Below the pieces are notes generated by a model, which was not told the DNA's origin, did not search any database, and saw nothing but the letters and a program-made list of their open reading frames with translations. A stretch of DNA of 64,000 nt from Hyphochytrium catenoides (lineage: Eukaryota > Protista > Hyphochytriomycota): contig FLMG01001160.1 of the NCBI GenBank assembly GCA_900088475.1, positions 1-64,000 on the forward strand, in the 5' to 3' direction. The position numbers and the translations under genes were made by a program. Shown here piece after piece: positions 25,308-27,267 of this stretch (the first letter of the stretch is position 1; each line of letters begins with the position of its first letter).

Positions 25308-27267
25308 TTAGAACTGAATGCTGTCAAGCTCTTCCTCGCGCGAACCGCTAGCCTTCGGAGATGGCGACGGTTCAACCCCATCGGGACCGGGAGTTTGAGT
25401 TGCGTCAGTATTAGCCCGCTTTCGCATCTCCTCCTGCGGGAGTGAGTACGAGATAGTGACGTCAGTTCAGAACGCCTGATTAGTTCCAGACACCACAATC
25501 ATGAGCGCTTACTTTTAATTGCGACAAAAGAGAAAACCCAGCTCTTGAGTGGTTGCCTCGAACGTCAAAGTTACTCCCTACATCTAGACCTGGCTCACGA
25601 TGGAAGGAAGATTGTTTGTGGGTTGGAGATGCCCATTCGAAACCATGTTCTCTGTTCCCTGTATTATCTACATGACTCAAGCTGTCCATGTTCCGCAAAG
25701 GCGCGTCCTGGGTTGAGGCAGAGGTTACGCTGTAGGATAAACGTGGGCCATAATTGTCCGCCTGAGTTGAACGGCTGTTGGCTCTATCTGTTGACGCGAG
25801 AGGCCGAGGGTGCCCAAGCTGGCGCTTTTTGTGGCTGCCTGGCTGACCAGCTCGGCCTTGCTTGCTTCCTGGGCCTCTAGTATTATCGCGTGAGTACATC
25901 TCAACCAGTGTTATATACAGCTCCACGTTTGGATGAAGCTCCTTTAGCAAAGCCTGCGCAGAGTACTGCTTAGCCATTTTCTTAGCGAATCCGCTGCCTA
26001 CTCCTACGCGGTTGCCACACGACGCGATGAACTTGAACAAAAACTGGTGAGTTGTCCCAGTTGCTGCCAGCTCTTCGTTGGAACGCTGGGTCTGCTCAGA
26101 CTTATAGTTGACAATGATCCCAGGATTTCTGTTCTGGTACTCTTGCAGGACTTGTGCCGGAGTTTTGATACCAAGTTCAGCGCAGGCGGGCACCACACGA
26201 GGGTCTTCGACCTGTAGACGAATGAATTGACTGATCGTCATATTTTGCGAATTGTTCGTGGAGGTAGGCAACTGCTCTCCATGTAGCGGCGAGAGCACTT
26301 GTCCTTTCGCCTTCAGGTCCTGCCAGAAACCTGGGAGCAGCATATCAAGAGTAGCCTCCGCGGCTAGCTGTTTAGCCATCTTCTTGTTCCCGTACTCAGC
26401 CTTCCCATACTCAATACCATCCAGGTACACTGAGCAGCTATAAGGACAGAGCGGGTCGTCAGCTTCCTTTATGACGTACTTGGGAAGGCACTTGAGCTTT
26501 GTCATCGTATACTCTTGCAAGAAGCTGATAGCCGTCTTTCCCTCCGGGGACGGGATATCGTTCTCACCGTTTCTGAGAGCCTGCCGGCGCGCCTCCTTTG
26601 CCTCCTTCTTCTTCTGCGTCTTCGCAAGCTTCGCCGCTTTATCATTTTGTCCCTGACAGACGTCAGTAGAACTCAGGCCTGAGTCAGCCACAAAGTTTGA
26701 AGATGACCCTTTACTGGCCGAAAAGAGGCTAGCAGCGGAGTCTTCGTCCTTTTGAGCAATAGTGTCCGCGACATCTGGACCATACTCTTGCGCAGTCTCG
26801 ACCGATCGAGCTTTCTTTTCTTTGGATGACAATTCCCCGCCTTTATTTCCCTCTGTTGCATGAAAGCCAGCTCCTCGTTTCCTTTTCAAACCTAGAGAGC
26901 TCTTTTTCAGCGTCTCCATGCAGAGGTCATATATCTCTGTAAAGAGGACCCTAGGGTTGGCCGAGGTGAATGCATTGGAAAGGGTAAAGCTAGGTTGAAA
27001 CGTCCTGAGTGGGGGCGAGTGGATCTCTACATGGTGCTCTGATGGACAAATATATGGTCTGGTCCAGGTGACTACTCTGCTTTCTTGGTGGAAATAGCAC
27101 GTAGTACCACTGATGTGTGACACGGAAGTCCAGCCACGAGGAAGGGTATTTGAGAGCAGGCTACTCTCATAGTCTTGGGCACTATCTGCGTGCGTTCGCC
27201 CCTGCGCTCGATCGGACTCAAGTCCATGTTGTGGTGCGGCCTCGCCAGCAAGACTTTTGCCTTCCAT
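25308..27267 (-). CDS. DGCR8: DGCR8/Pasha-like Microprocessor subunit (WW/Rhed-like region, two dsRBDs, C-terminal helix); exons 27267-25513 and 25433-25308, about 626 aa
   Basis: WW-like [31 protein letters not shown]..HSPPL. dsRBD1 GKTAISFLQEY..PYSCSVYLDGIEYG..KKMAKQLAAEATLDMLLPGF. Linker VEDPRV. dsRBD2 TPAQVLQEYQNRN..KKMAKQYSAQALLKELHPNV..LVEMYSR. The phase-0 intron 25512-25434 (GTAAGC..CGCAG) yields LLSQLK|EEMRKR. Confidence 0.85.

Follow-up and report, generated by a model that had tools for sequence, protein, structure and literature searches.

The stretch of DNA analysed here (hereafter the window) is the first 64,000 nucleotides of contig FLMG01001160.1 from Hyphochytrium catenoides. 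On its minus strand, at positions 25308–27267, it carries a gene whose product is almost certainly an orthologue of the Pasha family, to which human DGCR8 belongs. The minus-strand open reading frame (ORF) at 25480..27267 encodes 595 amino acids. A predicted donor of canonical form, GTAAGC, sits ten codons before its stop, with the acceptor CAG 79 nt on, and the predicted join of 27267..25513 to 25433..25308 gives a product of 626 amino acids. A preliminary description of the locus had proposed this product as a DGCR8/Pasha homologue of full architecture; we reproduced the 626-residue product and its coordinates exactly, and all of the motifs quoted there are present in the 595-residue ORF. 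No RNA genes turned up when the window was scanned with Rfam and for tRNAs.

Sequence and fold of the encoded protein

What kind of protein does this gene encode? When the whole protein was compared by phmmer with all PDB chains, human DGCR8 ranked first (E = 1.2e-30), in two separate alignment blocks: residues 40–89 correspond to the WW/dimerisation region of human DGCR8, and residues 238–464 to human residues 504–704. Identity to human DGCR8 and animal Pasha in the core is 28–37%, and the same alignments showed that the human DGCR8 strings given in the preliminary description were correct. Pfam recognised two dsrm domains (E = 3.5e-11), together with a WW match below threshold. Residues 30–470 also served as the query for an exhaustive HMMER search, in which 1.84 billion representative proteins yielded 336 matches at a threshold of E ≤ 1e-3, and nearly all of the best 150 of these 336 carry a WW-like block followed by a first and a second double-stranded RNA-binding domain (dsRBD1 and dsRBD2) and a C-terminal helix. 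The AlphaFold model, which was built from a 57-sequence alignment, has predicted local distance difference test (pLDDT) scores of about 89–95 at residues 41–90 and mostly above 90 at residues 241–460, the remainder being disordered. With this model, the top seven Foldseek matches in the PDB were all human DGCR8 (E = 1e-14 to 8e-10). VIA-align likewise placed seven DGCR8 entries first (Z = 11–13.5), aligning model residues 232–468 with human residues 498–709, so that the alignment of the core C-terminal helix reaches human residue 709. The leading entries for the DGCR8 core in the fold searches were 2yt4, 9asm and 6v5b.

We considered that the protein might instead be a generic tandem-dsRBD protein of the HYL1/DRB, TRBP/Loqs or Staufen type with a superficial likeness to DGCR8, given that dsRBDs are common and that the WW match lies under the Pfam threshold. 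However, DGCR8 was matched at E = 1e-30, whereas no other dsRBD protein did better than TARBP2 (E = 0.004), with RNase III following (E = 0.0075), and the WW block by itself matches DGCR8 structures (E = 1.6e-8). Moreover, every top fold match is DGCR8, with TRBP, Loqs, R2D2, DRB4 and Staufen behind it at Foldseek E ≥ 2e-6, and the tail motif described below is common to both proteins. A generic protein of this kind is therefore extremely improbable, and it was rejected because phmmer, exhaustive HMMER, Foldseek and VIA-align all favour DGCR8. The homology originally claimed was thus borne out by reciprocal comparisons of both sequence and fold.

The individual elements of the protein (Table 1) retain the residues expected of the family. 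The tryptophan equivalent to human W329, which lies at the dimer interface, is kept in the WW-like subdomain, in which the non-animal family alignment shows no variation at W68, P71, Y72, H83 and P86. The KKxAK RNA-binding motifs are intact in both dsRBDs, and D355 in the linker is nearly invariant across the family.

Table 1. Features of the Pasha-family gene and its product, with positions in the window
Feature	Position	Strand	Residues or description	Basis
Pasha/DGCR8-like gene, entire	25308..27267	minus	two exons, 626 codons and stop	ORF list, spliced model, PDB phmmer
Exon 1	25513..27267	minus	codons 1–585	ORF list and spliced model
Predicted intron	25434..25512	minus	79 nt, phase 0, GTAAGC...CAG	sequence and model
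Exon 2	25308..25433	minus	codons 586–626 and TAA	spliced model
WW-like dimerisation subdomain	27001..27150	minus	residues 40–89	phmmer to 3le4_A (E = 1.6e-8) and 4e5r_A; alignment; pLDDT 89–95
dsRBD1	26332..26541	minus	residues 243–312, KKxAK RNA-binding motif	Pfam dsrm at 246–309; match to 1x47; pLDDT >93
Inter-dsRBD linker	26173..26331	minus	residues 313–365, DGCR8-type VEDPRV	aligns to human IEDSRV
dsRBD2	25930..26172	minus	residues 366–446, KKxAK motif	Pfam, phmmer, AlphaFold, VIA-align
DGCR8-core C-terminal helix	25876..25929	minus	residues 447–464, HPNVELYITLVEMYSR	aligns to human HPHVKNWGSLLRMYGR; predicted helix 451–459
Disordered low-complexity spacer	25543..25875	minus	residues 465–575	pLDDT 40–48
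Candidate Drosha-binding tail helix	25419..25536	minus	residues 578–590, FSLLSQLK/EEMRK, split by the intron at the slash	animal-only hidden Markov model

Relatives and genomic setting

The nearest relatives of the protein are those of Saprolegnia, Achlya and Aphanomyces, at 39–40% identity, and further oomycete relatives occur in Pythium insidiosum, P. oligandrum, Phytophthora, Plasmopara, Bremia, Peronospora and Globisporangium. Three amoebozoan classes are represented by Balamuthia, Rhizamoeba (two copies) and Planoprotostelium, whose proteins carry the Drosha-binding tail motif, and all of the named non-animal matches were from oomycetes or Amoebozoa. When named databases were queried with the whole protein or the non-animal alignment, low-complexity sequence dominated the output, and 3 and 7 matches, respectively, were obtained; a region-restricted search gave 5 oomycete matches. 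Most of the public entries are labelled as hypothetical, DRBM-domain or WW-domain proteins, and three, from Aphanomyces cochlioides, Planoprotostelium and Balamuthia, have automatically been named DGCR8. Examples of entries belonging to the family are SDRG_06697 of Saprolegnia diclina, KAG9412361 of A. cochlioides, PRP79171 of Planoprotostelium and KAL6047321 of Balamuthia.

A phylogeny of 51 rows, calculated with IQ-TREE under LG+C20, included no outgroup dsRBD proteins and is effectively an unrooted three-way split. The stramenopiles form one clade (100/98), of which the window protein, sister to all of the oomycetes, is the deepest branch; the Amoebozoa form a second together with unnamed metagenomic proteins (99/96); and the third is the animal clade, with sponge and cnidarian DGCR8 (100/99). 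The stramenopile clade groups with the Amoebozoa, opposite the animal clade. We conclude that the protein is a heme-less form of Pasha and belongs to an undescribed non-animal clade spanning oomycetes and Amoebozoa; the literature that we searched contained no description of Pasha in either group, or anywhere else outside Holozoa. Within the oomycetes, the gene models of Phytophthora, Plasmopara, Bremia and Peronospora keep the WW-like block and dsRBD2 and have lost dsRBD1, whereas Pythium oligandrum, P. insidiosum and the Saprolegniales keep both dsRBDs. Because independent annotations agree, the loss of dsRBD1 in Peronosporales looks like a real, lineage-specific event and not an annotation error.

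A gene for the P protein of the glycine cleavage system, split by introns into at least five ORF pieces, lies on the plus strand at 28302–31481, divergent from the Pasha gene and about 1 kb from it, and a minus-strand ORF at 20699–21868 encodes four WRKY19-type zinc fingers and a right-handed beta-helix region. The nearest clusters of the zinc-finger protein are commonest in Oomycota and diatoms, and the neighbouring genes are eukaryotic. Intron style, which the preliminary description had compared with the host, is ambiguous against the P-protein gene without a reference protein and was not relied on. No synteny with the Saprolegnia diclina locus was found.

Could the contig be an animal or holozoan contaminant, or a mis-assembly? 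We found no point in support of such an origin, and several against it. Two samples of the organism supplied three DNA runs, and in these the read depth of the gene equals that of its neighbours (about 380× and about 28×); the window protein is sister to the oomycetes and lies outside the animal clade; the zinc-finger family next to it is commonest in Oomycota and diatoms; and orthologues lie on oomycete scaffolds of 0.8 Mb (Saprolegnia diclina) to 16 Mb (Bremia). We therefore regard contamination as having a negligible probability, and it was excluded, as was a recent transfer from an animal, on read depth, tree placement, neighbours and the oomycete scaffolds. The earlier argument against contamination survives on even depth and scaffold size, and the suggestion of a non-animal, stramenopile host is supported by the oomycete relatives, the position in the tree and the zinc-finger neighbour.

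The gene also appears in other material. A 2025 soil metagenome contains a 151-nt contig identical to window positions 26183–26333, in dsRBD1 and the linker, which indicates that soil harbours this organism or one very closely related to it. In the 2011 sample (two runs), about 1.3% of sites differ from the window across 24000–29900, with several small intergenic indels; such a divergence suggests another strain, or else a divergent allele, of the organism. Among the 25 coding differences listed, 16 are synonymous and 9 non-synonymous; only one of the nine falls in a folded domain, and the spacer holds most of the non-synonymous differences in this list. The list is incomplete, and the pattern in it fits purifying selection on a gene that is selectively maintained.

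Tail helix and heme module

Animal Pashas share the C-terminal motif PN..IL.KL.EEM.KL, and a search of the PDB with a vertebrate tail identified this motif as the DGCR8 peptide co-crystallised with Drosha (5b16, chain B). In the window protein, the predicted splice junction creates the sequence FSLLSQLK/EEMRK. We built a hidden Markov model (HMM) from animal tails only, with 1000 shuffled window tails and 30 held-out animal-clade proteins as controls. The spliced window protein scored 12.6 bits against this HMM and the unspliced reading −1.3, whereas the best of the 1000 shuffles reached 4.4 bits and the held-out proteins had a median of 16.7; the score of the window tail falls inside the held-out animal range. 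The motif is also found in Balamuthia, Planoprotostelium and several unnamed proteins. The tails of the Saprolegniales finish in ..LQQLKSELRK.. and score 4.4 bits or less, so that the candidate tail of the window protein is nearer to the animal and amoebozoan form than theirs (12.6 against ≤4.4 bits), and those of Phytophthora and Peronospora finish in a degenerate ..PN...IEKVTANLRNQMSN.

The heme-binding part of animal DGCR8 has a different distribution. At the position aligned with the heme ligand (C352 in the IPCL motif of human DGCR8), the window protein reads PPLRTFQPS and has no cysteine, whereas the ligand cysteine (xPCx) is present in 72 of the 72 animal-clade sequences. In the Saprolegniales a cysteine is conserved within the sequence GCGM, which closely follows the PPL motif and places this cysteine two residues downstream of the ligand position in animals; the Peronosporales have no cysteine. 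With an HMM of the animal segment between the ligand cysteine and dsRBD1 (Rhed-C), the C-terminal subdomain of Rhed was not detected in the window protein (−5.5 bits) or in any other non-animal member (all ≤2.3 bits), against a median of 75 bits for held-out animal-clade proteins. Lacking both the ligand cysteine and this half of Rhed, the window protein probably does not recognise the apical junction through heme as animal DGCR8 does. The claim of a full architecture must therefore be narrowed: the WW-like subdomain, the two dsRBDs, the linker, the C-terminal helix and the candidate tail helix stand, but neither the heme-ligand cysteine nor the C-terminal half of Rhed seen in animals is present. 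The shared scaffold thus consists of the WW dimer module, the two dsRBDs and the Drosha tail, and the heme module appears to be specific to the animal-side clade. This suggests that the scaffold is the older part and that DGCR8 acquired heme sensing later, on the animal side.

In the animal-side clade, the branch that diverges most deeply is a gene on a 740-kb contig of ENA ERZ20067936. This gene is intronless, in a compact genome, and encodes IPCM (with the heme cysteine), the tail motif and a Rhed-C segment scoring 33 bits. Its source may be a unicellular holozoan; if this is true, the heme module predates animals.

Possible function, origin and known counterparts

Taking these observations together, we think that the best joint explanation, and a reasonably probable one, is that the gene encodes a Pasha/DGCR8 orthologue that serves as a Microprocessor subunit in a stramenopile standing beside the oomycetes. 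The protein would dimerise through its WW-like subdomain, and its two dsRBDs would bind the stem of a hairpin or other double-stranded RNA. With its tail helix it would bring in a Drosha-like RNase III of class II and stabilise this enzyme, for which oomycete DCL2, described as most similar to Drosha (PMC10080066, PMC4791657), is the candidate. Protein and RNase III would then make up a Microprocessor-like complex that works without heme and cleaves small-RNA precursors for the first time. As to the partnership with a Drosha-like RNase III in itself, we lean slightly in its favour. An Acanthamoeba protein 40% identical to human Drosha has been reported (PMC13315211).

Several points weigh against this proposal. 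No class-II (Drosha-type) RNase III gene was found in the window, and part of the animal mechanism is inapplicable, since the heme cysteine and Rhed-C are absent. The predicted tail helix exists only in the spliced reading and hangs on the removal of the 79-nt intron, which is not shared with Saprolegnia, whose tail is encoded in a single exon; furthermore, a direct phmmer search of the PDB with the 45-residue spliced tail did not find DGCR8, so that the motif is detected by the profile alone, at a modest 12.6 bits. In addition, Bollmann et al. argued, pointing to a PAZ domain in oomycete DCL2, for a function nearer to that of Dicer (PMC4791657), and in Plasmodiophora a functional Drosha-like enzyme acts without dsRBD partners (PMC13547706). 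These two reports, together with the loss of dsRBD1 in peronosporalean orthologues, which suggests functional drift, would suit a protein that belongs to the Pasha family by descent and has no Drosha-like partner. Such a protein might assist the canonical Dicer (oomycete DCL1) as its cofactor, or might bind dsRNA more generally in the nucleus, with a part in rRNA or snoRNA processing or in dsRNA surveillance. We consider this unlikely, because one would hardly expect the tail motif to be retained in animals, Amoebozoa, Saprolegniales and the window protein unless a partner surface were conserved as well. The protein described here is a concrete candidate for the cofactor of oomycete DCL2. The role of this enzyme has been unclear for more than ten years in the oomycetes, among which are major pathogens of crops and fish.

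How old might such a complex be? Textbooks treat the Microprocessor as an animal invention. Brate et al. (2018) placed it in animals and Ichthyosporea, with an origin within Holozoa (PMC6206976). A tail-bearing Pasha in stramenopiles and in three amoebozoan classes either pushes the possible origin towards the root of the eukaryotes or reveals an ancient transfer. We put forward, as a tentative possibility, that a heme-independent Drosha–Pasha Microprocessor, with WW dimer, two dsRBDs and Drosha-docking tail, was in place in the ancestor shared by Amorphea and stramenopiles, near the last eukaryotic common ancestor; that it survives in the oomycete line of stramenopiles and in several Amoebozoa; that animals, or holozoans, added only the heme-sensing Rhed; and that DCL2 is the oomycete Drosha, with the present protein as its missing cofactor. 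It is likewise possible, though doubtful, that an ancient lateral transfer, with an amoebozoan or a holozoan as the donor, brought the gene into the oomycete-line stramenopiles, in which case the gene would have no bearing on a Microprocessor older than the opisthokonts. The distribution is patchy enough to suit a transfer: Pasha was scored as "no hit" in Ectocarpus (PMC4513859), DGCR8 was not identified in the pathogenic free-living amoebae (Acanthamoeba and Naegleria) examined in a 2026 review (PMC13315211), and the named non-animal matches are limited to oomycetes and Amoebozoa. However, each supergroup forms its own strongly supported clade with none nested in another, and the branching within the stramenopiles tracks the organisms, with the window lineage followed by Pythium and then the Saprolegniales. 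The lineage-specific predicted intron and the normal genomic context also speak against a transfer, and any such event must predate the oomycete radiation. The unrooted three-way tree is compatible with a transfer and does not decide between it and a pre-opisthokont Microprocessor.

Among known systems, plant HYL1/DRB1, Dictyostelium RbdB and animal TRBP, Loqs and R2D2 are functional analogues, since they have tandem dsRBDs and serve RNase III enzymes as cofactors when small RNAs are made. Unlike the window protein, they have no WW-like subdomain, DGCR8-type core helix or Drosha-binding tail, and they resemble it far less (Foldseek E no better than 2e-6; phmmer E no better than 0.004). The Pasha of ichthyosporeans (PMC6206976) resembles our case in that it is non-animal, carries a WW domain in some species besides its two dsRBDs, and was identified in a similar way from reciprocal hits and phylogeny. 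Ichthyosporeans, however, are holozoans close to animals, whereas the window gene belongs to a stramenopile with amoebozoan sisters; this comparison is by description, no ichthyosporean sequence being identifiable among the named matches.

Human DGCR8 and animal Pasha (PDB 6v5b, 6lxd, 9asm, 2yt4, 3le4 and 5b16) share with the window protein a WW-like subdomain with its tryptophan, dsRBD1, a linker with xEDxRV, dsRBD2, a core helix with HPxV...MYxR and a tail with LLxxLxxEMxK, all in the same order. The window protein differs from animal DGCR8 in having no heme-ligand cysteine, no detectable C-terminal subdomain of Rhed and no long N-terminal region. Its tail helix lies about 115 residues past the core, compared with about 25 in animal DGCR8, and is predicted to be split by an intron. 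The oomycete and amoebozoan proteins in the databases are members of the same family and of the same non-animal clade as the window protein.

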